Origin: Macrostomum lignano
Lineage: Eukaryota
Length of the DNA: 64,000 bases
NCBI GenBank assembly: GCA_002269645.1
Contig: NIVC01002024.1
Span: forward strand, 88,158-152,157
Reading direction: 5' to 3'
In this document: positions 1 through 62,030 of the stretch, piece after piece
Layout: every line of letters begins with the position of its first letter
Numbering within the stretch: the stretch's first letter is position 1
The notes under the pieces: model-generated
Databases searched by the model: none
Told to the model about the DNA's origin: nothing
The model's input: the letters and a program-made list of their open reading frames with translations, nothing else
Made by a program: the position numbers and the translations under genes

Positions 1-79
1 AATACATATATGAATGATTTTATCATGCTATCGCATAAGCATCTTTCTGCCTCGCAAACTAAGTGAAGTCTTTACAAAA

Positions 80-1260: not shown

Positions 1261-2401
1261 ATGAGTAAAGGTATTGCTATTTTGCTAGCCATCATAGCGA
1301 GCTTGGTGCTGGCTTCTCTGGAAAATCCAACCAGTGAGCAGTCTAGGCCTAGTTCAACTGCCGCTTCAACTGCCGCTTCAACTGCCTCTACAACTGCTGC
1401 TTCAACTGCCTCTACAACTGCCGCTTCAACTGCTTCTACAACTGCCGCTTCAACTGCCTCTACAACTGCCGCTTCAACTGCTTCTACAACTACCGCTTCA
1501 ACTGCCTCTACAACTGCCGCTTCAACTGCTTCTACAACTACCGCTTCAACTGCCTCTACAACTGCCGCTTCAACTGCTGCTTCAACTGCCTCTACAACTA
1601 ACGCTTCAACTGCCGCTTCAACTGCCGCTTCAACTGCCGCTTCAACTACCGCTTCAACTGCCGCTTTAACAGCCTCTACAACTGCCGCTTCAACTGCCTC
1701 TACAACTGCCGTTTCAACTGCCTCTACAACTACCGCTTCAACTGCCGCTTCAACTGCCTCTACAACTGCCGCTTCAACTGCCTCTACAACTACCGCTTCA
1801 ACTGCCGCTTCAACTGCCTCTACAACTGCCGCTTCAACTGCCTCTACAACTACCGCTTCAACTGCCGCTTCAACTACCGCTTCAACTGCCGCTTTAACAG
1901 CCTCTACAACTGCCGCTTCAACTGCCTCTACAACTGCCGTTTCAACTGCCTCTACAACTGCCGCTTCAACTGCCTCTACAGCTGCCTCTACAACTGCTAC
2001 AACAGCCAACTTGACAAAGCAGACTACGACAAATTCCCGCACAACTCAACCCTCAACTACAACTACAGCTGCAACTACCGTAACAACAGCTGGCAGTGCA
2101 GTGCAAACCACGCCAGAACCAGTAGAACTTCCTAATCTAAAAGTGCAGGTGAATCGTACAACAACACAATTGATAGAGATTGTTTGGTCCTGGCCAGACA
2201 ATGTCAGTCAGGTGGTGAAACATTTAAATCTGACATATTTTGTCAACTGCGACTCCAGAGCTGCTGCAGAGGAGACACAATCAATGAGGCACACTTGTTA
2301 TTACAATTCAAGTGGAGAAGTCTACAACATCACCATTAGAGCCGTTGCTGATGGTCCCGATTATAGGGAAGGTCCAACGCAGTGGCTGCTGGCAACAACA
2401 A
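1261..2401 (+). CDS. RPTP coding exon 1: signal peptide, mucin-like STAA/STAS/TTAA repeats and first FN3 domain
   Basis: MSKGIAILLAIIASLVLASLEN signal peptide; 12-bp coding repeats about 1357-2000; FN3-like region IEIVWSWP...YNITIRAVADGP; phase-1 donor A|GTGAGT at 2402. Confidence 0.85.
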
Positions 2402-15217: not shown

Positions 15218-15579
15218 TTTATTAATCCTGCCCAATAAAGTATATGTACTGCACGCATCGATTGTGCACAAAACTCACTGGAATAGACAGCGTGCATCTG
15301 CTTTAGCTGTACGCGGTATCAATAACGAATTTAGGCCTATGATGTCAATATAAACATATTCGTAGTTTCGTTACACGCGCTAAGTTATTTCATAATAACC
15401 AAGACAGGAATCAATATGTACATGAAAGATGTACAGGTCTGTCGCTCTAGACAGAATGCTTGTTTGTTTTCTGAATTTTTTATTAACTGTTATTAAAAAC
15501 TTGATTAAAAAAGCTAAATATAAAAACACAAGAGTGTTTTTCAGTTCTTAGCTATTAATGAGATTTTCGTGCAACGCAA

Positions 15580-16040
15580 ACTGAGGATCTGGGAGGCTGG
15601 TGGCCCAGCAACTGAAGATCTGGGAGGCTGGCCTAGCAACTGAAGATCTGGGAGGCTGGCCCAGCAAATGAGGATCTGGGAGGCTGGCCCAGCAACTGAG
15701 GATCTGGGAGGCTAGCACAGCAACGAGGATCTGGGAGTCTGGCCCAGCAACTGAGGATCTGGGAGGCTGGCCCAGCAACTGACACTCTGGGAGGCTGGCC
15801 CAGCAACTGAGGATCTGGGAGGCTGGCCTAGCAACTGAGGATCTGGGAGGCTGGCCTAGCAACTGACGATCTGGGAGGCTGGCCTAGCAACTGAGGATCT
15901 GGGAGGCTGGCCTAGCAACTGAGGATCTGGTAGGCTGGCCCAGCAACTGAGGATCTGGGAGGCTGGCCCAGCAACTGAGGATCTGGGAGGCTAGCACAGC
16001 AACGAGGATCTGGGAGTCTGGCCCAGCAACTGAGGATCCG
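15580..16040. repeat. 28-bp minisatellite CAACTGAGGATCTGGGAGGCTGGCCCAG
   Basis: About 16 copies; same unit and orientation as 55780-56305. Confidence 0.92.
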
Positions 16041-16704
16041 GCCGGGGGACTTGTAAAAAAACGAAAGACCAGAAGACCAACGCAGTGCACAGTGCATGCA
16101 TATTATGGTAATAATGAACCCAAACAAGCATAAACGCGATCTTAAGATACCAAAAAGTCCAGCTTGGCGGAGTAAACATTGGCGATATATTGTCAGCAAA
16201 ATAATATACTAGCTTCATAACTACTACTAATGATTAAAGCCTTCACAGCTGATCAGATGGCCAATAAATATAGATGAGATTCACGATATCAATAAACGGG
16301 AAAAACACAAAGCCGCAATTAAAGCTAATGATAGGCTTGTAGAGCATAACTATATAAACTTCGACCTGGAATAAAGCTGTGTTCTAGGATGCATGAAAAT
16401 CGGTTTAAAAGTTGTGCGATTGTGATTATTTGATAAAGACAGTCATTAGAACTTATGAAAACACTAAAACTGAAGCCATTAATTCGTTTTAGAGCACATT
16501 TATATACATATAATATAATATTGTAAAATAGTATTGAGCAGCGCTGGAATAAATATATAATTCTAGACCTCGAATAATCTGGTATTGAAAAATAAACAAA
16601 ATAAATAGAAAAATGGGAAGACAATCATCCATTCAAAGAAGACATTTTCATGAAGAAATACGGCGCTCAGCTGAAGGATCAGGGTAGTGGGATTGTGACA
16701 CTAC

Positions 16705-17295
16705 CTGAAACATTGGGAGTATAGGGTTGTGACACTACCTGAAGTATCAGGAATGTAGGGTTGTGACACCATCTGAAGTATCAGGAATGTAGGGTTGTGA
16801 CACTACCTGAAGTATCAGGAATGTAGGGTTGTGACACTACCTGAAGTATCAGGAATGTAGGGTTGTGACACCATCTGAAGTATCAGGAATGTAGGGTTGT
16901 GACACCATCTGAAGTATCAGGAATGTAGGGTTGTGACACCATCTGAAGTATCAGGAATGTAGGGTTGTGACACCATCTGAAGTATCAGGAATGTAGGGTT
17001 GTGACACTACCTGAAGTATCAGGAATGTAGGGTTGTGACACTACCTGAAGTATCAGGAATGTAGGGTTGTGACACCATCTGAAGTATCAGGAATGTAGGG
17101 TTGTGACACTACCTGAAGTATCAGGAATGTAGGGTTGTGACACCATCTGAAGTATCAGGAATGCAGGATTGTGACACCATCTGAAGTATCAGGAATGTAG
17201 GGTTGTGACACCATCTGAAGTATCAGGAATGTAGGGTTGTGACACCATCTGAAGTATCAGGAATGTAGGGTTGTGAAACTACCTGAAGTATCAGA
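16705..17295. repeat. 34-bp minisatellite GAAGTATCAGGAATGTAGGGTTGTGACAC(CATCT/TACCT)
   Basis: About 17 copies. Confidence 0.92.
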
Positions 17296-17530
17296 AAGTT
17301 TATAAAATGTTTAAAAATACACCATGTGTTCTACTAACAGTATTAATGCAGCATTTGCAACTATTTACTACAAGGATAAAAAGTGAAAATTACTTAATAG
17401 TTAAAAAATTAAAATTTGTGAAGGCAAGCGTATTTGTTGACAATTTTTGGTTTAGAAAGGTGAGTTATAATCATTTGCTCACACCACAATGAAATCAATC
17501 AATTTCATGTAGAATCTCATTCGAGCTCCA

Positions 17531-19627
17531 TCACATCTGACTGTAGTTGGTTCGGCCAGAACGATTCTTATAGATCCTGTAGGCAAACATGCCGATAGCA
17601 ACTAGGACCAAGCCAAGCACAATGCCGCCAAAGAATGAGCCGGCATCGAAACGACCGCCAGCATTCTGGCCACCGGCCGATGTTGTAGCATCTCCAGGAG
17701 TGGAATGGCTTGGAGCCTTGGTGGTGCTAGATTTACCTGTGCTACTACTAATACTACTGCTAGTAGTAACAGTTGACTTGTCATTAGTAGTAGAGCTTGG
17801 CCCAACAGTAGTACTATTGGTAGTTTCAGTAGTAGCATTAGTAGAGCCAGTGACTCCAGTTGTGCCAGTGACACTGGTAGTACCTGTAGTCTCAGTAGCA
17901 GCAGTGGTACTACTATTAGTACCAATAGTAGTTGTAGATGGCACTGCAGTTGTTTCTGTAGTTGTGCTAAACAACACTGGATTAGCCAAGCCTAAAATTG
18001 ATTTTTAATGATAAAATGAATATTTGTTGTGCACAATTTTAATCAAATAATAATCAAATATTAACAATATAAACCCCAAGGACTACTCAAATAGAAGGAT
18101 AGGAAACAACATTTTTTAGAAAATATTAAGGCTAGTTTTCACCAAAAATACACTATGGAGATAAGAACTTTTCTCTTTTTTTCATATTAAAATTGTTATT
18201 GCTTTCAATAGGAGGCAGACCCAATGTTCAACTTTTGATATGTTTTGCCTTCTTATTGCTCTATTGATATTTATAGAGCTTTTTGTTTAGAAGATTAGGA
18301 TTCTGTGTAATTTTTTATTGGATATTTTATTTAAATTCAAGGGCATTGCCATGGATTTTTTGGTAGGGGGACAAAGCCAACTATTATACATGTATATGTT
18401 CATGAATAAATTCTTACATATACATTATTTTCAAAATTGGTATTGTCAGCACTAATTTTAGCACTGCAGGCACTTATTTTAGCACTGCAGGCACTCATTT
18501 TAGCACTGCAGGCACTTATTTTAGCACTGCAGGCACTTATTTTAGCACTGCAAGCATTTATTTTAGCACTGCAAGCACTTATTTTAGCACTGCAGTCACT
18601 TATTTTAGCACTGCAAGCACTTATTTTAGCACTGCAAGCATTCATTTTAGCCCCATAGGCACTCATTTTAGCGCCGTAGGCACTCATTTTGGCACCATAG
18701 ACACTCATTTTGGTGCTACAGGCACTTATTTTAGTACCACAGGTGCTATGGTTTGGTTTGGTAATAGCCTAGCAATACTATTTATAGTGGAAAATTGATA
18801 TATACAAATATTTGTTTAAATGCTTTATTATTTATTACAAGCTTAAAAACCTAGAAAGCTTGAAATTTACATTTAAAAATGAACTTTTTTATCTTTTTTT
18901 CTACTTCTCAATAACTTTTATGATTGTGATTCTATAAAGTACATGTTAGGTGTACATCTACTATTTTCTTAGAAGTGAAATATACTTACTGTGCACGTCT
19001 ATTTTTGGCATGCAAGGCCAATAACACCCAAATTTTCAGGCATACTATATGATCTAGAGTGTAGATATAACATAGCTGTAAGTATTACAGTAGGCCTATA
19101 TAAAACCAGTATTTTATTTATTTTAGTTACTGTGTAAATAATTCTAGTATTATTCATATGGTACTATGCATATAATGAGTAGGCCCTAGCCAAACAAAAA
19201 TCATGGCACTAAAAATCATGGAAACCCACCATTGCATCCTACCCTAATGCCCTAATCCATGTTTAGGAAATTTGTGTATTTGATACTGTGATACAGTGCC
19301 TCTGGCCCTCTGTTATAGGCCCTACTTTTTTCAGATTAGGATCATTTTGAAAGTCACCTTGGCTTGTCCTTGTCATGTAAAACATCCCTCTGGTCTGTCT
19401 ATATGGTAAGCCTAGACAGTCCAAAAAGGAAAGTCAATAAAAGGGGGAAAAGTATATGTTTAAATATTTGCCTATATGGTATACACATACCAGATACTTC
19501 TACAGTTTCAGTACTTATGCCTACTTAAGTTATTGTAATGTGTCATGTAAATAGAAAATAAGAACTTACACTGCAAGGAAATGATGGAAATGAAAAAGCA
19601 AACACCGATACAGAACTTTATCTTCAT
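17531..19627 (-). CDS. CD164/porimin (TMEM123)-family sialomucin, 172 aa, two exons
   Basis: Exon 1 19627-19570 (MKIKFCIGVCFFISIISLQ, signal peptide, T|GTAAGT) joins exon 2 17991-17531 (TTTTAG acceptor, phase 1). Thr/Ser stalk; FDAGSFFGGIVLGL matches the CD164 FDAASFIGGIVL signature; C-terminal NYSQM fits a YxxPhi sorting motif. Confidence 0.88.
18440..18745. repeat. 21-bp intronic minisatellite TTATTTTAGCACTGCA(G/A)GCAC
   Basis: About 14 copies, degenerating rightwards. Confidence 0.88.
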
Positions 19628-23271: not shown

Positions 23272-24985
23272 TGATTTATGACCGCACCTGTCGTATTTTT
23301 ATTGCCCCGAGGGAACTGATAGGATCTCTTGGCCACGTGAGTTTGGGTGGCAACAAGCTCAGCCAATCAAAAAATTCGACGTGCGTTATAACAAATCGGC
23401 TCAGCCAATCAGAATCGAGGTGTTCCATTATAACAAATTGCGGTCCAGTTGGCGGCTATAAAACCGGCGTTTTTGGCCCGCTCGGACTTCAACTTGGCCG
23501 CTCACCTGCCACCTGACATCCGGCTGCTACTCGCGACCGTCGTCTCTTGATCCCAGGATCACGACTCCCCCCCTCATCATCAAGGACGAATTCCCCCGGT
23601 CGTCAGCAGCGAACATCAAGGTTAAAGATCATCACCTGCTAGCTATCTGCGAAGTTTGTGACAGCATCATCCGGGGCCTACAGCTGCGAAGCACTAAGCC
23701 GATTCGGTCACTGTGGATTACCTGGTCTCCGGCTGTTGAGTTTCTGATTGGTTGGGTGAGAGGCTACCTAGACTTGCTTGATTGGGTGATTCCTTACCTG
23801 TCCTCTATTTCAGTAGCTGGATTAGGCGCACACTTTTGCTCATTTTGTTCAGTAGTGCTGTTACTGAGGCAGAAATCATTCAATAATACTGCTAGTAGTC
23901 CGAAACGCCAATTCAATCTGAAGTGTGAAGTGATTTGAGGAGAAGGTTAAATCTGACAGTTATTTTTATCGGTTTTATTTCTTTGTTCGCCGATGGCTCA
24001 GATGAGTAGCTAAGCTAGTAGGCGCCGGTCACAGTGGACCAATGGCAAGGCAGTTTTCAGTCGATCAATCAATCAAATCAGTGAGCAAAACTGCCAGAAG
24101 TGCAGAATCGGCGCCAGAGATGTACTTTGTGCACTCTAGGTTAGCCAAGCGGCTCGGGTAATGAATCATGCGAGGTCTCTGAAGTTCGAGTTAGTCTATC
24201 ATCAGCGCTATGAGAGGCTAGTTGGCGCGTTGAAGGCCAAAAGTACATATCTTCGTATTTAGCAATGTAATAGTACATGTAGCTACCCCATAGACTCGCC
24301 ACTTCAAGAATCCCCTGCACAAGTCCCCTCTGTACCTGCATGGCCAACGCGATCTAGTCCCAGCAGTGTCCCTTATCATCGGCTATGACTTCGAGATTGA
24401 CAGCAAAAAGACACTAGTTGGCAGGTAAGTACTAAGCCCCCTCTAGTCGGAAGCCCGATTTCGAGAGTCCCGGTGTGGTGAGCCAGGACACACGGGCTGG
24501 TGGCAGCGAGTTAGCTTAGTCTGCGGATTAGCTAATTTCTACCTTCAAAATTCTCCCTGCTTGTCTCTCGCTGTCCCTCTCTTAGCTATAGGACCTAGAC
24601 TGCTCGCCACACGATCAAGCTACCATGGGGCTGACATGATTTTTGTGCCCGCTGGGCACTTATTCTTGCTTTTTAATGCCATAGACTACGTTTAAGCCCG
24701 CTTGCAAGAGTCAAACTTACTTTAATGCAAATTAGCGGGCAGTTAATGTCATTAACTGCCCGCTAATTTTGTCCCACTTTGTCAAGAACACAAATGTCTA
24801 TGGCACAATAATAGTAATACCTTAACGCTTTTAAGGGCGTTAATGGGAAAATCAGAGGGCGCTCTCATTTCTCATTAACGCCGGCAAAGCATGGGTACGA
24901 GCTATTAATGTACTATTGATTTATTTCTGAGACCTGAGGCCCGAAGGCTTCCCGAAAGGGGCCGAAAAGGCCGAAACCCATTAAT
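23272..24985 (+). other. Diverged copy 2 of the promoter-bearing element, with a roughly 280-bp foldback insertion
   Basis: Same start TGATTTATGACCGCACCTGTC; CCAAT boxes; TATAAAA at 23457; donor at 24425. Block 24305-24636 aligns by eye with 22478-22803, and 24918-24985 with 22838-22890. Confidence 0.6.
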
Positions 24986-25140
24986 TCGATGTGTCAAAAA
25001 ATTTTGCGCATCTGTTTTAGAAAGCTTCTGGTCTTTTCAGACGGGTTCCATATATATTTACGTTAGACTTACAATTGGCTAAAAGAGATCTACAGTGTAT
25101 ATATGTATCCGGGCCAAACGTCTCTACCACGACCCATTCT

Positions 25141-26320
25141 CAACAACAACAACAGCAACAACAGAGTACGCTGCCGGTTCGCAAAAGCAGCGTCAGATGG
25201 CGCGCTTCGAAGCCTGGGCGCGAACAAAGGCCGCACCGCCGGCAGAGTCCGGGGCGCCGGCGTCAGCCAGCAGACAGTCGACGTAGCGCCGAGTCCTCGC
25301 CTGTCCCCGCCGGTAGGGTGCCTGCAACGTAAGTAACAGCACCTCCTGCACCGGCTCCGGACAGTAGGCCTCGGCGCGGATGACGTGGCCTGCCAGCTGG
25401 AGTCGCCGACGGCGCAGCAGATCGCTAGGACGGGCCAGGCCGGCGCGATGATAGAGCGCCGTGTTGGTGACTCGCTCGTTGCCGATCTTGAAGGCGGCGC
25501 GCAGCAGGCCAGCGTGCGCCGCGTCGACTTGAGCCTCGAGCGAGTCTGTCAGCGTCCAGGTCTCGGCGTTGTATAACAAGACGGTTTCGATCACCGCCTG
25601 GAACAGCGCCGCCCTCTGGCGGTCCGGTAGGGCCTCGGACTGCAGGACTGACCTTATAGAACGAAAGGCAGCCCAGGCAAGTCCTCGGCGACGCCGCAGA
25701 TCCTCGCGAACGTCGGGAACCAGACCGCCGAGGTAGACGAACTGCTGACATCTTGGAAGCTCGCTCGCCTGTCCGTCAGCGCCTCGGCAGAAGATTGCAG
25801 CCTCGGTGTCGTCCGGCACGCATAGCACGACGGTCTTCTGCGTGTTGACCACCAGGCCGACGCTCGCCGCAACGGCAACCAGCCTATCCAGCTGTCGTTG
25901 GGCGCCCTCGACGGTCGAGGACAGCAGGGCGAGGTCATCGGCGTAGCCAAGCACGCTGAGCCGTCTCTCCGGTTGGCGTCGACCCACGCGTCGCCGCAGC
26001 AGGAAGCCGTCGTCGTTGGAAGGCAGAGCAGTCCGTAGCACCCAGTCAAGCACCAGAATAAATAGGAACGGCGCTAGCGTATCTCCCTGGAGCACCCCGG
26101 AGGATGTCTCGAAGAAATCCGATAGGCCGTCCGGTGTTGAGACAGCAGCCGTCGTGCCGTGGTACAGCGCCATGACAGCAGTAATCAGCAGCTCTGGCAC
26201 GTTGTACGCACGGAGCACCTCTGGGAGCGCGTCCCTCACGACCGAGTCGAAGGCCTTCCTGAAATCGACGAAGATCAGGATCAGGGTCAACTGGCGGATG
26301 CGCGCCTCCTCGATGACGCG
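25141..26320 (-). mobile_element. 5'-truncated RTE-clade LINE with an intact RT reading frame
   Basis: ORF 25193-26290: FVDFRKAFDSV, SGVLQGDTLAPFLF, LGYADDLALL, FVYLGG, LLYNAETWTL and RRGQARTRRY. GC-rich and stop-free, so recent. Tail is (TTG)n on minus. Confidence 0.92.
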
Positions 26321-26371
26321 TCAAGTAGACTACTCAAGAACATCTTAAGTAGTCTACTTGAGAAGTCCTTG
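26321..26371. mobile_element. Right part of a palindromic mini-element ending GAAGTCCTTG
   Basis: Hairpin 26321-26361 (19-bp arms, 1 mismatch); CCCATTCT direct repeat at 25133-25140 and 26372-26379. Confidence 0.65.
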
Positions 26372-28611
26372 CCCATTCTTTTAAAGATCGTCCGTACTGT
26401 ACGTCTCACGGGGGACGAGAAGGAAACTCAAGAACAAGAAACGATATGAATCTCATCTCCTGGTAGTTTAGGCCTATAGTTACACAATACATGTACATGT
26501 ACATGTATGTCGATGTGTCAATACTCAACGGGTGCTGACTGGTATATTTGATCGGCGACAAACAAATAATTCAGCAAAGCAAAATCGGCGACAACTCAGA
26601 AGAAACAATTGTACATGTACCGGTATATAATCTTTTAATTATTTTAGTACAATATTTTTAGGATATAGGATTACAGTACCTTCATTTTCAAGGGAGTTTG
26701 TTTTATCCATATCCTGCGCGTTATCCAAACGTGTTTTCCAAGAAATGTTCTCATTTTCGAAGGTCACGCGAGCGATATCCAATTTATTTCAATCCAACGC
26801 ATTTTTTCTATCAAACGTCATGAGCATTAGTATAAAATCACTTCCTTTACTTTAAGAATTCGGACAGAAATTCAATTCCAAATTGCAGTTGCTGTTGCAC
26901 CAGCCGTGAGCAGATCAAGTCTAAGATCAGAGTAATCGATACAGACTACGATCAGGTCGGTAATCATGTCGAGAGATAATAAATTCTCGATCAAGTAGAG
27001 AGTAGTCGCAACAGTGTACTGACTACGATCGAGGGTCGAAATCATGACGAGGGGTAAAAATATAAAGCCTTGATCAAGTCCCAGATCAGATCAGAGATCA
27101 GAGTAGCCGATACAGACTACAAGAGGCCGGTAACCAAGTCGGTCTCAAGCACGGTTGACAAAAGAGGAGGGTATCGTTTTTAAGTAAATGCCCTTCCCCT
27201 TATCCATATTTTCGTGCAAATCCTGTGCAGTTGGCGCAAATAAAGTTACAATTTTGCGTATACATTTATATCAAATTATAAAGAGCAGCCGTTCAACGAA
27301 AGCCAGTTGTTTCCGGAGGGCGACTACGCTTCGAACGACACAGTTTATGACGCCGTTGATATTACACTAGTGAGCCGTCGTCCTATGTTCAATACCTGTC
27401 GGCGTACCGTCACTGTCTGTTAGAGCTGGACAATCAAATGTGTATGTACATGTACATTACTGTCTGCTTTATAACTGTGTATTTTTGAGAAACTGCCTTC
27501 CATCGCCATTTAATTCAACCTTATAATGATGAGTAATTTCATTGCGCCGGAATATAATGCAAGCCCCCACCAGTGGTCTGATTAATCGTTGTTCGCGCCC
27601 GTGACCCAATCTTTCCAACGTCTGGTTCACGCGTCGGTTGCACTTGCCGTCGGATTCGCGTCAGAGCCCAGCAGGTCAGACCAGAGACTTAGCACCCGGT
27701 CGGAGCAGCTCGCCAATCCAGTAGCATCAATTATTAGATCTGCTTATATAAATGGACTGACATTGAGTGCCATTGAGAAGGTCAGAAAAGCGTATTGATA
27801 GCATTTTGTGTTTCGGAAAGTGAAATATTTTACAGTTCTGTACATCTGAATTTAATATTTCTCTTTGAAGACGGCTGAATCGAATTCGATTCAATTCGTA
27901 GTCGTGGAATTAAAATTATGGACCCGTCCTTTATTTTTAATTTTACGCTACCCTGTTGAGCACGGGATTCGGCTGCAGATCCGGTTCCCTCATCCAGAAT
28001 TCACCCGGATTCATCTGCAGATCCGGTTCCTTCTTCCAGAATTCACCCGGAACTGTCACCGGAAATTTTATAGAGATCCGGGTCCATTTTCCGGAATTTT
28101 TTATTCTGATCCGGAAAATTCGCCCGGATTCTGTAAATTTTCGTGACAGATTCGGAATTTCCACCCCGTATCTGATTGCATTACAGGAATGAGGTGAAAG
28201 TTCAACGGGTAGGATAAAAGTAAACAAAAATTCTCTCTCATCTTTTTTCGCTTCCTCACCTTTCTTTTGTCCTTTCTTTTCTCTCGCTTCTACTCTCTTA
28301 TCTCCTATCTACTCTCTTATTTTTATTTTCTTCTCTCTTTTCTCTCATTTTACCTCTCTTCTCTACTCTCCTCTCTTCTTTCTTATCTGCTCTCTTATCC
28401 TTTCTATTACATCTCTTTGTCTTTCCTTTCTTTGTCTTTTCTCTCTCCTCTCTTCTTTTCCCTCTTATTCCTTTCTTCTACGTGAATAATGTTCCCTAAT
28501 ATTTTCTACTACACTAAATTTTAAGTCTGAACTACTAATAGTAGGTTAAAAGTATATCTGCTTGGCAATCTACCCTATCACACATTGTCTCAGTAATTTT
28601 TAGATGAACAC

Positions 28612-37996: not shown

Positions 37997-40900
37997 ATGC
38001 CAGTCAACATGGGCTCCAGCCGGTGCTGTCCTGAATGGCATCGCCGGTTGACAGCGGCAGCGCTGGCCTCAATACTGCTGCTTGTCGCCTGCCTAGCAAC
38101 CAGCTTATCCTTTCTAGCGCTGCGATCTGCTCACAGTTCTCAATCGACTCAAAGTCGGATTTCACCGACTGGTGAGAGCGCCGATTTGAAAATGGACGCG
38201 ACAGAGGGTGATGAGGATGGCGCTGAGGGTAGTCGGAAGCTGATTGCGTCAAGGCCGGAGCTGCTGCTGTGGAAATCGAGTAGCTCGACTGACGAGCGAC
38301 TGGGAGAGGCTCGGTTTCACCGTGAGTTGCGCCCCTGCGGCTCTTTGGTGCCGCTTGCACATCACCTGTCTATCCAGTGTCTCTATCACCTGTCTATCCA
38401 GTGTCTCTATCACCTGTCTATCCAGTGTCTCTATCACCTGTCTATCCAGTGTCTCTATCACCTGTCTATCCAGTGTCTCTATCACCTGTCTATCCAGTGT
38501 CTCTATCACCTGTCTATCCAGTGTCTCTATCACCTGTCTATCCAGTGTCTCTATCACCTGTCTATCCAGTGTCTCTATCACCTGTCTATCCAGTGTCTCT
38601 ATCACCTGTCTATCCAGTGTCTCTATCACCTGTCTATCCAGTGTCTCTATCACCTGTCTATCCAGTGTCTCTATCACCTGTCTATCCAGTGTCTCTATCA
38701 CCTGTCTATCCAGTGTCTCTATCACCTGTCTATCCAGTGTCTCTATCACCTGTCTATCCAGTGTCTCTATCACCTGTCTATCCAGTGTCTCTATCACCTG
38801 TCTATCCAGTGTCTCTATCACCTGTCTATCCAGTGTCTCTATCACCTGTCTATCCAGTGTCTCTATCACCTGTCTATCCAGTGTCTCTATCACCTGTCTA
38901 TCCAGTGTCTCTATCACCTGTCTATCCAGTGTCTCTATCACCTGTCTATCCAGTGTCTCTATCACCTGTCTATCCAGTGTCTCTATCACCTGTCTATCCA
39001 GTGTCTCTATCACCTGTCTATCCAGTGTCTCTATCACCTGTCTATCCAGTGTCTCTATCACCTGTCTATCCAGTGTCTCTATCACCTGTCTATCCAGTGT
39101 CTCTATCACCTGTCTATCCAGTGTCTCTATCACCTGTCTATCCAGTGTCTCTATCACCTGTCTATCCAGTGTCTCTATCACCTGTCTATCCAGTGTCTCT
39201 ATCACCTGTCTATCCAGTGTCTCTATCACCTGTCTATCCAGTGTCTCTATCACCCGTCTATCCAGTGTCTCTATCACCTGTCTATCCAGTGTCTCTATCA
39301 CCTGTCTATCCAGTGTCTCTATCACCTGTCTATCCAGTGTCTCTATCACCCGTCTATCCAGTGTCTCTATCACCTGTCTATCCAATGTCTCTATCACCTA
39401 TCTATCGAATCCCTATCATCTACTTACCCAATCCCCCTGTCCCATACATACCCAATCTTCCTGTCCCCTACCTACCCAACCCCCCTGTCCTCTACCTACC
39501 CAATCCCCCTGTCCTCTACCTACCCAATTCCCCTGCCCCCTACCTACCCAATCCCCCTGTCCCATACATACCCAATCTTCCTGTCCCCTACCTACCCAAC
39601 CCCCCTGTCCCCTACCTACCCAATCCCCCTGTCCTCTACCTACCCAATTCCCCTGCCCCCTACCTACCCAATCCCCCTGTCCCCTACCTACCCAATTCCC
39701 CTGCCGCCTACCTACCCAATCCCCCTGTCCTCTACCTACCCAACCCCCCTGTCCCATACCTACCCAACCCCCTTCTCCTCTACCTACCCAACCCCCTGTC
39801 CCCTACCTACCCAATCCCCCTGTCCTCTACCTACCCAATTCCCCTGCCCCCTACCTACCCAATCCCCCTGTCCCCTACCTACCCAATTCCCCTGCCCCCT
39901 ACCTACCCAATCCCCCTGTCCTCTACCTACCCAATTCCCCTGCCCCCTACCTACCCAACCCCCCTGTCCTCTACCTACCCAATCCCCCTGTCCTCTACCT
40001 ACCCAATCCCCCTGTCCTCTACCTACCCAACCCCCTGTCCCATACCTACCCAACCCCCTTCTCCTCTACCTACCCAATCCCCCTGTTCCCTTATCTGTAT
40101 TTATCAAAAAGTTAGCCGGTAGGGTAGACTCAATCCGTTCCTGTTGTGACCAGGTTCTTTTTTAAATATTTTCTTAGCAAAGTTTTTATCGCGATTAAAC
40201 AAATCCTTGTTGGTTTATCGCTGCATGGCTCTGGCGCTAAATAAGAGGTGATTTTATTGGTATCGATAAATATATGCGATGCACCCTAGCTTTAGCGGTA
40301 AGTAATAAAACAAATTGAGTGCTTTAGCGACTTAATGAATTATTCAGACACCTAGAGCCCACGCCTACGAGGTTTATGTGTCAATCTCATTAGGCTTCAT
40401 CAAGTACAGTCAGTTAAAAAAAGTTAATTTGCTATTAGGTTTCATTGGACATTGATGACCGCCGCTATAACCCTCCACTTCCCATCACAGTCCGCCTCTT
40501 CCGCTTCCAAAAACAGGCTTAGCCTTGCCGTGGGAAATCTATGCAGTCCTCATTATTTAACAGGGATATCTTCTAATCTTCTTAATCTGTGTTTTGATTT
40601 CCTTTGAAATGCACTTTGTATTGTTACCTGCCTACCTGATCACTCTGCCACTCTCCCCTCTGCCACTCTCCCCTCTGCAACTCTCCCCTCTGCCACTCTC
40701 CCCTCTGCCACTCTCCCCTCTGCAACTCTCCCCTCTGCCACTCTCCCCTCTGCAACTCTCCCCTCTGCCACTCTCCCCTCTGCCACTCTCCCCTCTGCCC
40801 ACTCTCCCCTCTGCCCACTCTCCCCTCTGCCACTCTCCCCTCTGCCACTCTCCCCTCTGCCACTCTCCCCTCTGCCCACTCTCCCCTCTGCCACTCTCCC

Positions 40901-46943: not shown

Positions 46944-47250
<307 letters not shown>

Positions 47251-47362
47251 CTGCATTGGTTTCCTGTCGGTGCGATCTCATAGAGCATCTCAGTCTGATG
47301 GGCAAGAGTAGAGGTAGATCGCAGTTCCATGTGTTCGCATGCATGCTACACTGATGCAGAAC

Positions 47363-47398
47363 CAAGGACTTCTAGACTAGCTAGTCTAGAAGTCCTTG
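47363..47398. mobile_element. 36-bp perfect palindrome with an 8-bp TSD (hAT-like mini-element)
   Basis: CAAGGACTTCTAGACTAGCTAGTCTAGAAGTCCTTG flanked by TGCAGAAC at 47355-47362 and 47399-47406. Confidence 0.8.
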
Positions 47399-48724
47399 TG
47401 CAGAACATTGAACTATCATCGAATTATGGTGAGAGCACAGAGAAGCTTTCTCAAGCGAAAATATTGTTTATAGGAATTTCCGCTCTACTGTCAATATAAT
47501 TGCCACCTTGACGTTGAAGCCTTATTAGATAAATTTCTGCCTCATCATAATTTGGTCAAAAGTGCTTTCACTTTTATAAGCATTGTGTACATGCAGTGCA
47601 GGCAAATCTATATATTGATGACATGAACAAGGGGCAGTTCATAGACTGAAGTAAAAAGACAGAAAATAAACTGTCTTTATCCCTCTAAAATTTCGAAATA
47701 TAACTTTACTGATTCTATTATACTAACCCCGCAAACTTCCTAATCTGCAAATTGCACCTACTAATAGTAGTGTAAAAGCAAAACAGTGCATTTAGTATGC
47801 TCTAACAGAACGCATGGCGCTAAATGAGGTTTCGCCAAGTGTCCCTGCTTCAGTTGTCATGGGAAATGATGGTCACGTGATGCCTATACGAATAGGCTAT
47901 TAAAGACTACATGAAGGCTTATATGAGCCCCAGGGTTAAGACCATAGACTGCAGCTTCTGCTACTCTCAATTAGCACTTAAAAAGCATTATTAGAATCTG
48001 ACTGATGTATTACGTAGCACTATGATAGCCTAGCTAACCATAGACAAAAGCTCTAATACTTTGGTAGACATACCGGAGATTAAATTCAATGCGCGTCAGC
48101 TTAAATGGGCTGCTGCAAAGCTACGTGTATATCAGTTACAGTATGTAGTCAGTCAGTCAGAGCACAGATGCGATACGGTCCCCAGACTTCGATCCCAAAA
48201 AACAACCTCAGCTGTGTAATCTAGCTAATCAAGCAATAGCAAATTGCAATCTAATTTAGTCTGCATCGGTCAATCAGCTGCCTCTATTTTGAGCATTATT
48301 ATAGCTATAATAAATCTCGATTCCTTTCTGACTGCAGGAACTGCTCCGATGGAATCAGGATATGCCCCGCCCTCAACCCCCATGATTGTATTTGCTCAAT
48401 TGCTCATACAGATTAGGAGCGTACAGACATTGATATATTATCCAGTTTGTTACTGTAGTCCGCTGGCTGCAGTATTAAGGTATAGGTTCTCTTCATAGTG
48501 CGAGGCTGGCGCTAGCTTGAAATCAGGAGCGTTTTGAGACCAATGCAATCTCAGCATTTTGATCAACTCGCTCCGTGCCCTGTTCCTGAAAATTTCTGTC
48601 AATTAGAGATAAAGCATCCGGGGTGTTTAAACAGGAACTTATGGTCTGCACCTGCCTTGAAGGGTTTCCTGTTTTATTGCTATAGTGCAATATTAATTTT
48701 AATTTATGCTTGATCATGCTGATT

Positions 48725-49640
<916 letters not shown>

Positions 49641-50199
49641 TGATCCTGGCTGAATCGCATTCCATCTTACTGGGAATGACAGTGTCAGTATACACTGCAA
49701 GCACATGCACCACTAGCTACAGCACATACTGTGTGCAAGGATAAAACTGGGAAAAAACTGGGTGAGCCTGTCACATTCCATTTATTGATATTATTAGCAT
49801 CCATCGCCGAGTTTGGGAAGAATCCCCATTAATCCCAGATTGATTGGGAGCTACCAAGGCTGCTGTCTGCGCATGTAATTCCTAAAGCTGTATTATGCAG
49901 TTACAGTGTACTAAGGCTTTATTAAACACTATCTACATACATGCATACTGATTGACTCCGCGTGGCGCAGTGTTGCGCTGCATATATGCATTGCAGCTAA
50001 CAGTGATGCAGTGGAAAATACGAGCAGGCGAATAGGCAGTCGTGAGACCTGGCTTAAAAGTACATTGTAATTAGCAAATACTCGTACTATTAACGTACTG
50101 ACGAAGATTAGAAGATAAAAATATTGTAAAATGCGTTTCTTCTACTGCACTCTCCGCTTAGACAGTAGTCAGCTTAGACTAAGGTTCAGTGAGTTCAGC

Positions 50200-51878: not shown

Positions 51879-53618
51879 ATGTCTGGCAGCGCCGCAACAA
51901 CTGACAGTTTGACTGAGGAACAGATTGAAGAATTTCGCGAGGCCTTCTCTTTGTTTGACAAGGACGGCGACGGGACGATCACTAATAAAGAGCTGGCGTC
52001 CGTGATGCGAGCGCTGGGCCAGAATCCTACGCAGGAGGAGTTGAAGGTATGGGCATAGGCTTAGTGCTACATGTGTCTCGTATCATATCGGATTTTGTAG
52101 CTATATGAATGCTTTATAGGTGTAGAAGGCATTATTTGTGTCTCTAAATACACGGGAAAAAATATGTAGCCTACGGCAATTACTGTAGATCTAGAATTGG
52201 CGCTAATATATATGGCCTTCAGCATTGAGAATTGGCGCTATATATGGCCTTCAGCATTGAGAATTGGCGCTAATATCTATAGCCTTACAGCATTGAGAAT
52301 TGGCGCTAATATCTATAGCCTTCAGCACTGAGAATTGGCGCTAATATCTATGGCCTTACAGCATTGAGAATTGGCGCTAATATCTATAGCCTTCAGCACT
52401 GAGAATTGGCGCTAATATCTATAGCCTTCAGCACTGAGAATTGGCGCTAATATCTATGGCCTTACAGCATTGAGAATTGGCGTTAATATCTATAGCCTTA
52501 CAGCATTGAGAATTGGCGCTAATATCTATAGCCTTTCAGCATTGAGAATTGGCGCTAATATCTATAGCTTTACAGCATTGAGAATTGGGCTAATATCTAT
52601 AGCCTTCAGCACTGAGAATTGGCGCTAATATCTATAGCCTTCAGCACTGAGAATTGGCGCTAATATCTATGGCCTTACAGCATTGAGAATTGGCGCTAAT
52701 ATCTATAGCCTTTCAGCATTGAGAATTGGCGCTAATATCTATAGCCTTTCAGCATTGAGAATTGGCGCTAATATCTATAGCTTTACAGCATTGAGAATTG
52801 GGCTAATATCTATAGCCTTCAGCACTGAGAATTGGCGCTAATATCTATGGCCTTCAGCACTGAGAATTGACGCTAATATCTATAGCCTTCAGCATTGAGA
52901 ATTGTTGCTAATATCTATGGCCTTCAGCACAGAGAATTGGCGCTAATATCTATGGCCTACAGCATTGAGAATTGGCGCTAATATTTCTAGCCTTCAGCAC
53001 TGAGAATTGGCGCTAATATTTCTAGCCTTCAGCACTGAGAATTGGCGCTAATATCTATGGCCTACAGCATACAGATATTAGCGCCAATTCTCATGATGCT
53101 GAAGGCTACACATTGTCGGCTGATTTTCCATGCTGGAATCAGGGACTACTTAAACTTGGCGCTAGTTTAAGTATAGTCCTTGGCTGGTATGGCAATATTC
53201 TTCGCTCCTAGAAAATGTTTTCTAAGAAACAGAATTCCTTGATTCGAATGCACAACACTCAGTAAGTAAACTTCTGAACTTTAAATGTCTCCAGGAGATG
53301 ATCAAGGAAGTGGATCAAGACGGCTCTGGGAGCATCGAGTTTGACGAATTTCTCTACATGATGCGCACGCAGATGCACAGCGTCGATTCAGACGATGAGG
53401 TTCGCCAAGCGTTCAGACTATTCGACGCAGATGGAGACGGCTATTTGAGCGCCGGCGAGCTGCGCCAAGTGATGCTGAATTTTGGCGAACGGCTCACCAT
53501 TGAAGAGGCCGAAGCGATGGTGGCGGAGGCTGACACGGACTTGGACGGCTTGGTTAGCTACGAAGAATTCGCCAAAGTTATGGGAATTGGAGCGGAACAT
53601 TCTGAAGACGATTATTGA
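51879..53618 (+). CDS. Calmodulin-like protein, 163 aa, four EF-hands
   Basis: Exons 51879-52046 and 53295-53618 (phase 0). Loops [36 protein letters not shown] and [12 protein letters not shown]. Too diverged in the C-lobe to be canonical calmodulin. Confidence 0.93.
52190..53110. repeat. 35-36 bp intronic minisatellite GAGAATTGGCGCTAATATCTATAGCCTTCAGCACT ending in one inverted unit
   Basis: About 25 copies; the inverted unit lies at about 53073-53108. Confidence 0.92.
53140..53182. mobile_element. 43-bp imperfect palindrome with an 8-bp TSD (hAT-like mini-element)
   Basis: CAGGGACTACTTAAACT...AGTTTAAGTATAGTCCTTG flanked by GCTGGAAT and GCTGGTAT (7/8 match). Confidence 0.72.
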
Positions 53619-57578: not shown

Positions 57579-60283
57579 CTAGGCCGGCGCCCAGCGGCCC
57601 TCAAGGGTACGCCCCATCCCGCAAGATAAAAGTTTGTAGTTTTTCTTCTTTGTACGTATGAAATATTTTTGTGAGGAAATTATGTAAAAAGCAGAATTTT
57701 AAAAGTTGATTTTTTTAGTTTCGGGTGCTTTTGTGCTTGTACCTGGCAGTACGCCTTTCAGTACATGTAGTGGACAGTGGGGCAAACTATTGATATCCTT
57801 ATTAATTTTTTTTCTTGTATAGTGAGCTCACTGCTCACTATTAATTTGCATTGACCAATCCTCATACTACAGCTAACTTGAACTTTTAACCCTTTGAGCA
57901 GCCATCTCTGAAAAAATTGCTGCAAGCTCCAAAGTGGGGTATAGGCAACTCGTGCAAATTTTTCTGAGTTTCATACACTTTAGAAATTGGATGTAAAAGC
58001 AAAAGTGTGCATTTTAGCCTACCTACTTATAAGTAATACCTTTCGATCTTCGAAATCAATGCAACAAAAAATATATTTTTAATACTCCACTACTTAAGCA
58101 CTAGCGCATGTACAATGTTACTTGTATTCTTAAGTTTTCATTTAGATGAGTCCAATTTGGTGGTCAATTCAGGATTTTTCAAGTAGTGGGGCAGATTTGC
58201 CCAAATTTTTGTTTTGGCCTAAAAAGCCAAAGTTTGCCAAGGTTTGCCAAGCTCAAAATTTACCCCCTTATATGCAAGTCCAGCCATGGCAAAGGGGGCG
58301 GCCGCCCGGTCTACTAGCTACATATACAAGTACATTTGACCGCCACAATTTGATCGCCATTCTATTCAAGGTGAAATAGGGCGGCGGGCAAATTGTGGCG
58401 GTCTCCACTGTCGAGTTATTTTAACCTAGAGGTGACACAGCTAATTTTGGCCAATTCATTTCAGTTGGGGTGGGGGTTAGAAGAAAGTGTGACGTTGCCA
58501 GTTTAAAGTGGTCCCGCAAAAGGGCCGTTGGACTGCAGCTCCTCTACAATTTCTCCAATCGTTTATTTTAACGTTTACTTGTAGTAGTGCCCAACGAATC
58601 TGTGCCTATCGCGAAATCACTGCGTACTTTGCTATCCTTTCATGCGACCGTAGAAAACTTGCACGATCGATAATTTTAAGTTCTTTAGCCAGCCAATGAA
58701 AACCACTCGTGCTTCGCGCTACCCCTCTGCGCTCCTTTATTAACCCCCGCCACGGCTGGCTGGGGGCCTCCTCACTCTTCTCCTTAGGCTTGTGTTTCCT
58801 GTCTAGGCTGTCTGGCTTGCGGCGTCTGACTCTTGTTTTCCTTCTCTCTCCTGGCTGCCTCGAGCCTCCTTATCTCTCGCCACGGCTAACGCCAATCTCG
58901 CCACTACTCATCTGCCCGCCTACTGCTGCTCACTGCCTTCACTGTGCTCATCGCCATCGTTCACCACGTTGCGTCGCCATTGTATCCTTCATCTGTCACT
59001 GACTTCATATTCTATTGCATTCAAAACCATTGTTGCAGCCTTGAACGTTCAAAACCATTGAACGCTATAAGCTTGTATTGACATTAATAACCAATTCTAA
59101 TATTGATCTCGACAATAAGACAACTACGGCAGTTTCCTGCCTTTATAAGCCAAGTGCTCCGCTACACAATCCGCTTTGCAAGAATTGACTTCGATTCATT
59201 TTGGGACTACGACTTACTGCAACTCTCGTCAAAACGGCCCTTTTAAGGGTCATAGCTATAGCCACTACGTCAATAACGTGACAAAAGGCTAGAGAAGTGA
59301 TATGGGAATTTCTACGTTGTACCGTTCTTGCCTGCTTAAGCGAATCTATGCGAAACAAACAAACTGTCCTGACTCCTGACTCCTTATCAGTGCAGGTCAT
59401 CAAGTTTTTTCTATTCCCATATTGCACCAAAGATAAAGGAAGAACAAAGACGAATTTTGTGCAAGGCTTGACAAGGTCTGAACTATATATATGTATATTT
59501 TATAAGTTACAACCTAGCATAAACACATAAATACTTTGATACGGAAAGTATTGATTCGATCTAACCTAAAATAGGTGCCAGCAAAAGAAATAAAATATTC
59601 ATAGCATTTTATACGTGCTTAAAAGTAAAACCAGATGGAAACAGATGGAAATTGCAGTTGTGCAGCTAGTTGATTATTATCAATGGATAAGTAGAATATT
59701 ACAAAAAATCTGTTGGCTTGAATTGGAGGTAGGAATACTATATACAATACCATTAGTATTTCATATACTGGGGTTTAAGAAAATAAATCCCCATTTCAGC
59801 CACCCACAGCAGCATCCCCTCCCACTAAGTTTCCAGCCCCTCCACCCCTCCTACACAGTTTTGAGCTAAATTACCCCTCCGGCTTCTATAACACTGAATT
59901 TTAAGCTGTACCTAATTCTAAGGTTCAAGAATGTAAACAATAAAGATAGAAGCAATATAATCAGTCTCTTAAATAACTCCAGTTCATGAATGACCGATCG
60001 CCAGCTTGTAGTAAACTCATGAAACTGCAGATCCTAAAAGTAAAGATAAAATGGCAGTTTGCGATCGAGTATGCATCGTAATATACTAATATTTAACTCA
60101 TAATCCACAATCATGTCTGCGTGTTGAAGCTGAGAACATATTCAGGAAGAAATTGCAGAATTGCAGAATACAGGGAATACGAGAATCGAGATAGAAGGAA
60201 ATCGGATTGATATAAAAAACCAGAGAAAGATATTTTTAGTACTCACTTGCAACTCATGCGTCCTACATCAGGCCTCCTTGGAG

Positions 60284-62030
60284 TCACCTGTCAGAGGAAT
60301 GACAAAAATGGCTTGCTTGATCCCTGTCCGCTCCAGCAATATTGGCAAGCAGATTCGCAGGCAAAATCCAGCACTTTCGCTCAGGTGTGCCAGTTAGAAC
60401 AGATGTCATCCTGTATAAGCCGATTCCTAGATGCAAAGATGGATATGGGTTGGTGTAGATGTTGTCAACTGGGTGTAAAATCCTGCCAGTGACTTGATTA
60501 GCTTCACTTACAGCTTCGATTAGGACGCATACTTTGTCGATTATGCAACAATTATCACATTGCTTTATGCTGAATTTCAACCGTGGAATGCGCTGCTCAT
60601 TCAACAGAAGATCGCGAACTCTGAGCACCTGCTTAACTGAATGCGCTGCCATGTGCCTTGTCACTTTACGCGGCGCTTTACAGATCCAAGAAAGTTTTCG
60701 AAAGGGAAAGTCGAAAAGTTGCAAGTACTGTCTGAATTCAGTAGCCTTCATGTGCTTCAATTCCAAGTCGATTTTCTGGGGTCTGCGTTGAAAGTTTGAA
60801 GGTGTCCAACCGGCAGCCATAGTAATTCGGTCACCCAATAGGCTCATTGGATCGGGATAGACGAGACACTTCTTGCCATTAGATTTGTCGAAAAATAGGT
60901 AAAATAGTTTCCTTGTGACTCTAAGGCAGATGGCATACTGGTAGTCAGGGGGAAAAGCATCGACAAAACTAATGTTAGGCAAATTTAGAAGGGGTGATAG
61001 AGCGAATTTTATTTTCCTGGTTAGCTCCTTTCCCTCTCGGTAATTGTTGGCTACTATGGGACTCCCCAACGCATTGAAAATGTTACTCTGTTGTCGGTAT
61101 AAGGTCCAGTAGCCCTGCAGTACATGCAACCGACGTACATGTGCCCTTGAGTAACCGAGACCTAGGCTCAAGCAGGCGCATCGCAAAACAAATCGGATAG
61201 TCGAGAAGCTGATACTTAAATTTTCGATAATATTTATGGAACCTGTAAGAAAATGTTTAGCCTCGTCGCAAAATTGTCGAAGATAATCATTCAGAGGTGG
61301 CTTGCCACAACCAGCCATACGGCTACTGGAAAAGGTCTGCTAAATACGCTGGGAATAGACATTAGTATGGGCCCAAAGACCGAAGTGGCTTGCTCGGTAC
61401 AAAGGCAAGCCGTCAAAATTAACGATGGCTTCAATTTTGTAAACCTTCTCAGTTTCACTATCGTGTTGTAGATATTCTGGCTTCAAGTGCAGCTGGTTTT
61501 TGCGAAACATTAGTTCTAGATTTTTCAGAATCAAAATGTAGCGAAAATGGTCTTTTCCCATGGATTCCAATTTTTCCATTGGATCGCCAGCATTGATGAC
61601 GGCCTCAATAGAGTTGATAGACTTCGGCGCAGGCAAGCCTATGTCTCTTAGACTATCAACAAAGAATTTTTTAGATCCACGATTAAGGTTGAAACAAGAA
61701 TAGACTACCAGCAAGATGAATATTTTTATCTTCTAAAGAGCGGTCATCCTCTTTCTTGTCAATCTCCTCATCTTCATCGCTGCAAACTCGCGCGAACTTG
61801 TCAAAATCAGGATAGCTGCCGTTGTCGTTGCCAAGATCTGGCTCCGTACCTTCATTGACTTCTGCTACAGAGGACTCCAAAGCAATGAAACCGGCAACTC
61901 TCCCAGAATAATCTGCTTTGACTACTTTTCTTTTTTTCTCTTGCAGTGCGATGTCTTCCAAAGCTTCTTGTTCTCCTTCCATGAACAAGCCCAGCAATCC
62001 TTATTTGCTTGTCGCCTCAATTGCCTTGTC
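60284..62030 (-). pseudogene. EnSpm/CACTA (CMC) transposase relic
   Basis: Across frameshifts: NFDGLPLYRASHFGLW, GCGKPPLNDYLRQFCDE, CDAPA*A*VSVTQGHMYVGCMYC, PSNFQRRPQKIDLELKHMKATEFRQYL and C-terminal YPSLHLGI, all typical of animal EnSpm transposases. Confidence 0.85.

Follow-up and report, generated by a model that had tools for sequence, protein, structure and literature searches.

The P superfamily of transposons includes 7-bp (Galileo and 1360) as well as 8-bp (P) target-site duplicators; to our knowledge, 7-bp duplications are known for this superfamily and not for hAT. The cuts of P transposase lie 17 nt within each inverted repeat (PMC2895639, PMC7776569, PMC10983969), after which both donor ends carry identical 17-nt 3' tails that are fused by end joining. 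For the Drosophila P{wa} element, the uncut reference, acccagacCATGATGAAATAACATA / TATGTTATTTCATCATGacccagac, consists of the 8-bp duplication, 17 nt, a further 17 nt and the second 8-bp duplication (PMC2895639, Table 1). The P{wa} junctions comprised microhomology joins (one type was found 14 times), blunt joins, insertions of 1–3 nt and longer fillers templated nearby, and arms lengthened when incomplete repair synthesis preceded end joining (PMC2895639). In hAT excision, hairpins form on the flanking DNA, and the footprints consist of altered duplication bases with no inverted-repeat sequence (PMC5499845). Miniaturisation by abortive gap repair or by internal deletion at microhomologies has been described for Stowaway-like MITEs of mosquitoes (PMC3814204) and for the Rover MITEs of yeast (PMC4316626).

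Here we describe very short palindromic elements in a 64-kb stretch of the Macrostomum lignano genome (hereafter the window) and their relatives elsewhere. P-element excision, the textbook precedent, appears from the anatomy of these elements to be the closest worked-out mechanism. Simple and tandem repeats make up 15% of the published M. lignano assemblies, whose repeat annotation discarded elements <200 bp (PMC5730564), so that elements of the present size would have been missed.

Results

The 36-bp palindrome

An earlier, sequence-only reading of the window had reported a 36-bp perfect palindrome with an exact 8-bp target-site duplication at 47355–47406. Both were borne out when the window was re-read and compared with shuffled sequence: the 18-mers at 47363–47380 and 47381–47398 are exact reverse complements with zero spacer, and the same 8-mer stands on either side. 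The features of the locus are:

47355–47362, no strand: left 8-bp target-site duplication, TGCAGAAC
47363–47380, plus strand: left arm, the outer 18 nt of the terminal inverted repeat, CAAGGACTTCTAGACTAG
47381–47398, minus strand: right arm, exactly reverse-complementary to the left one, CTAGTCTAGAAGTCCTTG
47399–47406, no strand: right 8-bp target-site duplication, TGCAGAAC

The arms join inside the self-complementary CTAGCTAG, so that both 18+18 blunt and 16+AGCT+16 are valid readings of the join. With its 18-nt arm, the element at 47363 was the sole spacer-free perfect palindrome with arms of at least 12 nt in the 64-kb window, and the longest arm in 30 block shuffles of the window was 10. 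When the window was scanned for short inverted repeats lying between 8-bp direct repeats, only 47355–47406 was returned (shuffles gave 0–1). The structure is real and not a product of chance, and its inverted terminal repeats and target-site duplication support derivation of the 36-bp structure from a transposon.

Further elements in M. lignano

The palindrome belongs to a family with the conserved termini CARGGACTWCT, which the data support and which recurs in the window, as the sequence-only reading had proposed: the same termini occur in a second element at 53140, in an element split by a LINE and in a lone end at 18077. The second locus contains a 43-bp element, CAGGGACTACTTAAACTTGGCGCTAGTTTAAGTATAGTCCTTG, at 53140–53182, exactly where the same termini had been claimed. 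Its flanks, GCTGGAAT and GCTGGTAT, are 7/8 identical, a near-duplication that had gone unmentioned:

53132–53139, no strand: left duplication of the second locus, GCTGGAAT
53140–53182, no strand: arm-to-arm 43-bp element with left arm CAGGGACTACTTAAACT, centre TGGCGC and right arm (read inward) CAAGGACTATACTTAAACTA
53183–53190, no strand: right duplication of the second locus, GCTGGTAT, 7/8 identical to the left copy

This element can alternatively be read as 17 + 26 nt. It is located in an intron of a calmodulin-like gene, the last exon of which (53298–53615) is 100% identical to the M. lignano UniRef entry A0A1I8GS05. A minisatellite nearby (52193–53093) is bounded by inverted units, and its unit is similar to the right arm found at 53140.

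A third copy had been placed at 26321–26371. The sequence is present there, but its limits had been misjudged: the family sequence begins at 26322, has no duplication at its own edges and forms the right part of a LINE-split element. An 8-bp duplication, CCCATTCT, occurs at 25133–25140, adjoining the LINE tail, and at 26372–26379, adjoining the family terminus:

25133–25140, no strand: left duplication of the LINE-interrupted element, CCCATTCT
25141–26321, minus strand: 5'-truncated non-LTR retrotransposon with a reverse transcriptase domain and a (TTG)n tail, inside the left arm
26322–26338, plus strand: remainder of the left arm (positions 12–28), CAAGTAGACTACTCAAG
26339–26343, no strand: 5-nt centre, AACAT
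26344–26371, minus strand: complete 28-nt right arm, read inward CAAGGACTTCTCAAGTAGACTACTTAAG
26372–26379, no strand: right duplication, CCCATTCT

Similarity to related LINE copies ends at 26320–26322 and the (TTG)n tail ends at 25141; the reverse transcriptase of the window LINE has M. lignano relatives with up to 98% identity. Most simply, the sequence would be read as a 61-bp element that had two 28-nt arms around AACAT and an 8-bp duplication and was later split by the LINE. The first CAA (25141–25143) may represent nt 1–3 of the left arm or, alternatively, the beginning of the tail. The truncated LINE may have entered after this CAA, with which its UUG tail can pair, and eight left-arm nucleotides, GGACTTCT, would then have been lost. 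If instead LINE cDNA was captured at an excision break, the same picture would result. A LINE-made duplication accompanied by 51 nt of 'extra' 5' sequence is less likely, since the extra sequence would need to start exactly at the family terminus CAAGGACT and the duplication has exactly the 8 bp of the family.

The lone end reported at 18077, CAAGGACTACTCAA, was also present:

18077–18094, plus strand: solitary family end, CAAGGACTACTCAAATAG, without partner arm or second flanking 8-mer

Local alignment across the whole window gave no partner arm for it, and its upstream 8-mer, ATAAACCC, had no second copy on the plus strand of the window. As a 14-nt match to the family consensus is expected by estimate approximately 0.002 times per window, the sequence at 18077 is a genuine family end, possibly a one-armed scar. 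The bare 8-mer CARGGACT was weakly enriched in the window (12 matches vs 5.0 expected; 1 of 100 shuffles reached 12). The matches at 3864, 3903, 10606, 22527, 35701 and 46303 had nothing in common beyond the 8-mer and are best regarded as chance.

A fourth M. lignano element, 39 bp long and with an exact 8-bp duplication (ATTGCACG), was found at one of the paralogous calmodulin loci of assembly GCA_002269645.1 (L118:15360–15398). Duplications of 8 bp were therefore associated with four loci, namely 47363 (exact), 53140 (7/8), the LINE-split element (25133/26372) and L118, with arm lengths of 18/18, 17/20–26, 28/28 and 17–20/17–21 nt, respectively. Approximately 107 kb of M. lignano DNA included these four short elements and one lone end; for this very small sample, the apparent density was approximately 1 per 27 kb. 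Beyond nt 11, all five M. lignano ends differed from one another, so that no homogeneous amplified family was seen, and the same 107 kb contained no long element or transposase with these ends.

Relatives in metagenome contigs

Metagenome contigs were scanned for CAAGGACTWCT and AGWAGTCCYTG separated by 0–30 nt, which permitted elements of up to 52 bp. The scan returned 113 paired-end matches in 112 stretches. Exact direct repeats abutted the termini in 36 of the 113 (32 of 7 bp and four of 8 bp), compared to approximately 0.009 expected, and approximately 22 independent sites remained once occurrences of the same locus in several samples were collapsed. The family is thus far commoner than chance in other eukaryotic DNA. 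The host DNA of the matches was eukaryotic and partly clearly animal, with flanking ORFs encoding CUB, syntaxin/SNARE and retroelement proteins, and similar scars most likely occur in other marine animals. The family is widespread in M. lignano and other marine eukaryotes.

The 7-bp sites displayed a palindromic target motif, GNYWRNC, and GGCCTAG recurred at unrelated loci. The flanks of the two GGCCTAGT loci were unrelated beyond the target itself, which indicates independent insertions into a preferred site. It follows from the duplications and the target motif that a genuine transposase, cutting its target in a staggered manner, put the structures in place. The 18-mer arm had no match in viral contigs, and the terminal 11-mers retrieved only unrelated primers and similar sequences from full-text literature.

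Variation and stability of the centres

Independent loci of the arm type CAAGGACTTCTATATACTAGCAC measured 29, 31, 34, 36, 39, 40, 43 and 45 bp. Each consisted of two shortened arms (13+21, 16+CTAG+16, 17+AT+21, 23+20 and 23+22), joined with or without 1–3 nt of filler; a short filler or microhomology was found at the join. The 16+CTAG+16 form is a perfect 36-bp palindrome like that of the window. The upper limit of this arm type was 23+22 despite the permitted 52 bp, and the second arm type (39, 40, 43 and 45 bp) also stopped at 45 bp. Loci with identical arms differed at the centre only; most arms had 11–23 nt, some 25–28 nt, and the shortest element had 22 bp (L086).

Several junctions recurred at independent loci with different duplications: a 36-mer three times, an asymmetric 34-mer twice (at the targets ACTAGGC and GGCTATC) and a 43-mer twice (at GTCTGTA and GCTGAAC). 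In orthologous copies, centre and length were unchanged while the flanks diverged by 7–20%, so that differences between loci were set when the junctions formed and not by later decay. Fillers were not significantly templated from nearby sequence overall (6 observed vs 5.7 expected at 6 nt); only individual cases stood out, such as L004, the centre of which contained an inverted copy of the element's own duplication.

The elements seemed to be strongly conserved in comparison with the flanking sequence (3% vs 10% differences), but this was rejected as an ascertainment effect, because the search pattern fixed 22 nt of each element. At the free positions, differences amounted to approximately 7% vs 10%, which was not significant; there is thus no sign of selective constraint.

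Search for a transposase

The Pfam search of the window covered its large ORFs and 94 further ORFs joined in three strings. No hAT, P or other DDE transposase was detected in the 101 non-repetitive window ORFs of at least 75 aa, which contained only reverse transcriptase, RNase H, fn3, PTP and EF-hand domains. A 344-aa ORF (60284–61318) and its neighbours had no transposase domain at E-values up to 10. The flanks of the metagenome loci likewise contained no transposase, their ORFs being amidase, CUB and syntaxin host genes or retroelement ORFs. By Pfam, neither the window nor these flanks encoded a THAP or P-type transposase; transposases of the P type have a THAP domain and a GTP-dependent RNase-H fold, and those of hAT a BED finger, a DDE domain and a C-terminal dimerisation domain. 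An autonomous hAT element with the same terminal repeats, for which the sequence-only reading had recommended a search, was found in neither the 64-kb window nor the metagenome flanks; a copy may lie elsewhere in the genome.

Discussion

Excision and repair as the probable origin of the elements

The most likely reading, though only somewhat more probable than not, is that the short elements are donor-site scars of the excision and repair of a cut-and-paste DNA transposon family. The parent family that we propose has the termini CARGGACTWCT, inverted repeats of at least 18–28 bp and an 8-bp target-site duplication. A full-size element would insert, duplicating 8 bp of the target, and would later excise; end joining would then close the break, keeping both duplications and the outer 11–28 nt of each repeat, head to head. 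The join at 47363 may have formed by annealing of two identical single-stranded tails at the palindromic microhomology CTAGCTAG. In a P-like variant, short repair synthesis from the sister copy before joining would yield longer arms. The variation of the centres would accordingly represent the spectrum of end joining on a fixed pair of ends.

The scar model was drawn from anatomy and variation, since no parent or occupied allele was seen: neither a full-length nor an autonomous element with such termini came to light, which makes the parent hypothetical, and none of the loci was seen in both an occupied and a scarred state. Anatomy, duplications, family, variation confined to the centre and stability of the centre once formed are shown by the sequences; a long parent at each site, the cleavage chemistry and the superfamily are inferred. 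Under a P-like stagger, the 36-bp element would keep approximately 2 bp of duplex, so that it could not itself be an excised substrate. The density of approximately 1 per 27 kb, from four loci, implies a long history of excision.

Besides the missing parent, the lack of loci seen in both states and the long excision history that the density demands, further observations count against the scar model. The templating of fillers from nearby sequence was not significant overall. Identical junction types occur at independent loci, which copying of elements would also explain; recurrent types are expected from identical ends, and their recurrence alone does not show copying. Arms of 25–28 nt are longer than the 17-nt stagger and call for the variant with repair synthesis. 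The termini, finally, follow the YARNG rule of hAT elements and do not match known P termini.

Comparison with P elements

Like the P{wa} junctions, the M. lignano and metagenome loci retain both duplications and approximately 17 nt of each repeat (11–23 nt in most arms) head to head as a near-palindrome. Microhomology, blunt and small-filler joins are found in both, as are the recurrence of a few junction types and the possibility of longer arms. The lengths of the duplications (8 bp in M. lignano; 32 matches with 7 bp and four with 8 bp elsewhere) also lie within the range of the P superfamily. The termini differ, being CAAGG or CAGGG here and CATGATG in P (zebrafish Pdre2, CATACCTG; PMC10983969), and some arms reach 25–28 nt, beyond the 17 nt of P. 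Furthermore, the P{wa} junctions were laboratory events, whereas the present scars would be natural, apparently abundant and old, and distributed over several animal hosts. Membership in the P superfamily is unproven, and we limit the claim to a repair of excision breaks that resembles that of P.

Comparison with hAT elements

The sequence-only reading had termed the palindrome hAT-like. Two features agree with this and are shared with Ac, hobo, Hermes and Tol2: the YARNG termini, as every end begins with CAAGG or CAGGG, and the 8-bp duplication at the four M. lignano loci (TGCAGAAC, GCTGGAAT/GCTGGTAT, CCCATTCT and ATTGCACG). The motif GACTWCT / CAAG, repeated just inside the terminus, is also reminiscent of hAT subterminal repeats. 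The target motifs and the 7-bp relatives do not agree, no hAT transposase was found in the window or the metagenome flanks, and the type of excision would differ. The target motifs of hAT elements are nTnnnnAn in the Ac/hobo/Hermes group and nnnTAnnn in the Buster group. Neither was found in the small sample of M. lignano duplications, in which position 2 was G, C, C and T, position 7 was A, A, C and C, and no TA occurred at positions 4–5; six 8-bp metagenome sites fitted neither motif as well. Among the relatives elsewhere, 32 had exact 7-bp duplications. The MITEs of hAT families measure hundreds of bp and contain subterminal binding sites, unlike the present elements.

If the loci are end-joining scars, the 11–28 nt kept from each repeat would not be the hAT pattern of excision. 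A hAT parent would require abortive gap repair as the source of the scars, a route known for Ds and for the birth of MITEs (PMC3814204, PMC4316626). Membership in hAT is unproven.

Alternative explanations

It is unlikely that the 22–61-bp palindromes are themselves mobile as TIR-only 'micro-MITEs', moved by a hAT-like transposase encoded elsewhere. Such mobility would fit the clean duplications at every intact locus, the palindromic target motif and, above all, the high apparent density with no long relatives nearby together with the occurrence of identical elements, asymmetric ones included, at independent sites with different duplications. A 180-degree turn within 36–45 bp would be no tighter than that of nucleosomal DNA, and MADE1/MiHsmar1 provides an 80-bp TIR-only precedent in another superfamily. 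However, the heterogeneity in length and centre is typical of repair junctions and not of master copies, and the centres did not drift later. The 22-bp element is hard to picture as a substrate, and the 36-bp element would fall apart on excision under a P-like stagger. We know of no eukaryotic transposase that acts on substrates this short; the known hAT and P transposases depend on binding sites in subterminal or internal sequence, which these elements lack. The earlier proposal of TIR-only elements that transpose was left unsupported, as variation among loci of one arm type is confined to the centre, which is the pattern of end joining. That the palindromes of 22–61 bp are the transposed unit, and hence the smallest known eukaryotic mobile elements, reduced to two transposase-binding termini bent by about 180 degrees, with tens of thousands of copies in the flatworm and others in further marine animals, we consider more doubtful still.

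The same end product, i.e. both duplications, two shortened arms and small central asymmetries, would arise by collapse in place, if longer MITE-like or foldback elements were shortened by breaks at the hairpin tip or by internal deletions instead of being excised. Long palindromes are unstable and are 'revised' by central deletions, and the window contains foldback-like repeats, e.g. the minisatellite at 52193–53093. Nevertheless, we regard this course of events as quite improbable: neither the 107 kb of M. lignano DNA nor the metagenome flanks contained an intermediate with these termini in the range from 50 bp to several kb, two arm types end at 45 bp where 52 bp were permitted, and the stability of the centres across 7–20% flank divergence argues against ongoing erosion.

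An origin unrelated to transposons, whether by chance, through faulty assembly or as a regulatory site that binds protein or forms a hairpin, would find parallels in the duplication-free short palindromes elsewhere in the window, but has next to no probability given that the perfect 18-nt arm with its exact 8-bp duplication is far beyond chance, that architecture and termini recur with duplications at M. lignano L118 and in many unrelated data sets, and that the elements show no sign of selective constraint.

Relation to miniature elements

The elements resemble MITEs in being short and non-coding and in having inverted repeats and a duplication. They were not found as an amplified homogeneous family, identical forms occurring at 2–3 loci at most in a small sample. 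Like MADE1/MiHsmar1, they consist of two inverted repeats with a few bp in between; MADE1/MiHsmar1 differs in being twice as long, in its TA duplication, in its membership in Tc1/mariner and in its homogeneous high-copy family. Ds, which derives from Ac, is a miniaturised DNA transposon. With Ds and with the Stowaway-like and Rover elements, the present loci share internal loss, junctions with microhomology or filler, and duplications that were kept. Those elements retain tens to hundreds of bp per end and were then amplified, whereas only 11–28 nt remain here and no junction was evidently amplified.

Implications

If the loci are scars, both duplications and two arm stubs long enough for recognition by sequence alone were left behind, and the genome would hold a countable fossil record of the former sites of a transposon. 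A comparable record is invisible for most superfamilies, because their footprints comprise only a few bases. Such a record could provide excision rates, target preferences and the outcomes of germ-line end joining over evolutionary time, and would do so in a species that serves as a model of regeneration and whose genome was duplicated recently. Classification of a family that combines hAT-type termini with P-type scars would be worthwhile, given how many superfamilies still lack a described cleavage chemistry. Natural, abundant scars of this kind across taxa, and the CARGGACTWCT family itself, were not found in the literature searched.

The window as a whole was extremely rich in mini- and microsatellites (77 TRF rows). 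Other short palindromes, without duplications, were located at 24729–24769 and 58338–58403.

Target sites and single loci of the metagenome relatives

In the relatives with 7-bp duplications (metagenome contig loci L004–L110), the target sites made up a palindromic motif, GNYWRNC. The extended target GGCCTAG(T) recurred at unrelated loci of this set, suggesting a site with strong insertion preference. At loci L004, L060, L085 and L106, an uninterrupted syntaxin/SNARE ORF adjoined the element. These contigs therefore look transcript-derived, and the element they share probably belongs to an untranslated region. In its centre, the element has GATAATT, the inverted copy of its own 7-bp duplication (AATTATC). 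A 40-bp element occurred in two copies with identical flanks, 779 bp apart, on contig stretch L070 (1077–1116 and 1856–1895); a local tandem duplication took the element along.

Retrotransposon probably inserted in a family element

One family element of the window was probably split by a LINE:

25141–26321, − strand, 5′-truncated non-LTR retrotransposon with an RVT_1 domain and a (TTG)n tail

The CAA of the transposon arm appears to be the priming site of this LINE. Its DNA identity to ENA and JGI metagenome contigs was 84–87%, and the UniRef relatives of its protein, up to 98% identical, were fused into M. lignano gene models.

Palindromes and tandem repeats

Two further inverted structures were present in the window:

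24729–24769, perfect palindrome of 41 bp with a 1-nt spacer, AAATTAGCGGGCAGTTAATG T CATTAACTGCCCGCTAATTT
58338–58403, inverted repeat, its 29-nt arms 83% complementary and separated by 8 nt

Neither was flanked by a duplication. The termini of the palindrome were unlike those of the CARGGACT family, and the inverted repeat showed no relation to this family. The palindrome sits approximately 370 bp past the tail of the LINE.

The tandem repeat load was exceptional, with 77 TRF rows for the whole window, and one array consisted of 44 copies of a 24-bp unit that were 99% homogeneous. Arrays included:

52160–53113, minisatellite of approximately 25 units of 35 bp, the last unit inverted
38361–39406, 13034–14975, 6311–7562, 46945–47250 and 48727–49641, other examples of tandem repeats

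Since its terminal unit is inverted, the minisatellite at 52160–53113 is bounded as a whole by inverted repeats (foldback-like). Its unit was similar to the centre and right arm of the nearby family element at 53140 (TTGGCGCTA...TATAG.CCTT), with an equally high score in 26 of 2000 shuffles; a terminal inverted repeat may have given rise to the array. GATA/ATCT microsatellites flanked the main element, the 36-bp perfect palindrome, on either side.

Genes and open reading frames

The coding features were:

60284–61318, − strand, ORF of 344 aa, ATG to stop
1–17989, host genes
10596–12515, + strand, fn3 and protein-tyrosine-phosphatase exons of a receptor-type phosphatase
17531–17989, − strand, exon with a mucin-like Ser/Thr-rich stretch and a transmembrane tail

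Pfam gave no match to the 344-aa ORF at E values up to 10, and the assemblies index contained no exact record of it; the adjoining ORFs likewise received no Pfam assignment (E up to 10). The 344-aa ORF may encode the decayed protein of a mobile element; nothing connected it to the CARGGACT ends. The receptor-type phosphatase gene was broken up by RNase H/RT fragments (at 7.6–9.5 kb of the window) and large minisatellites. The exon at 17531–17989 may be CD164-like.
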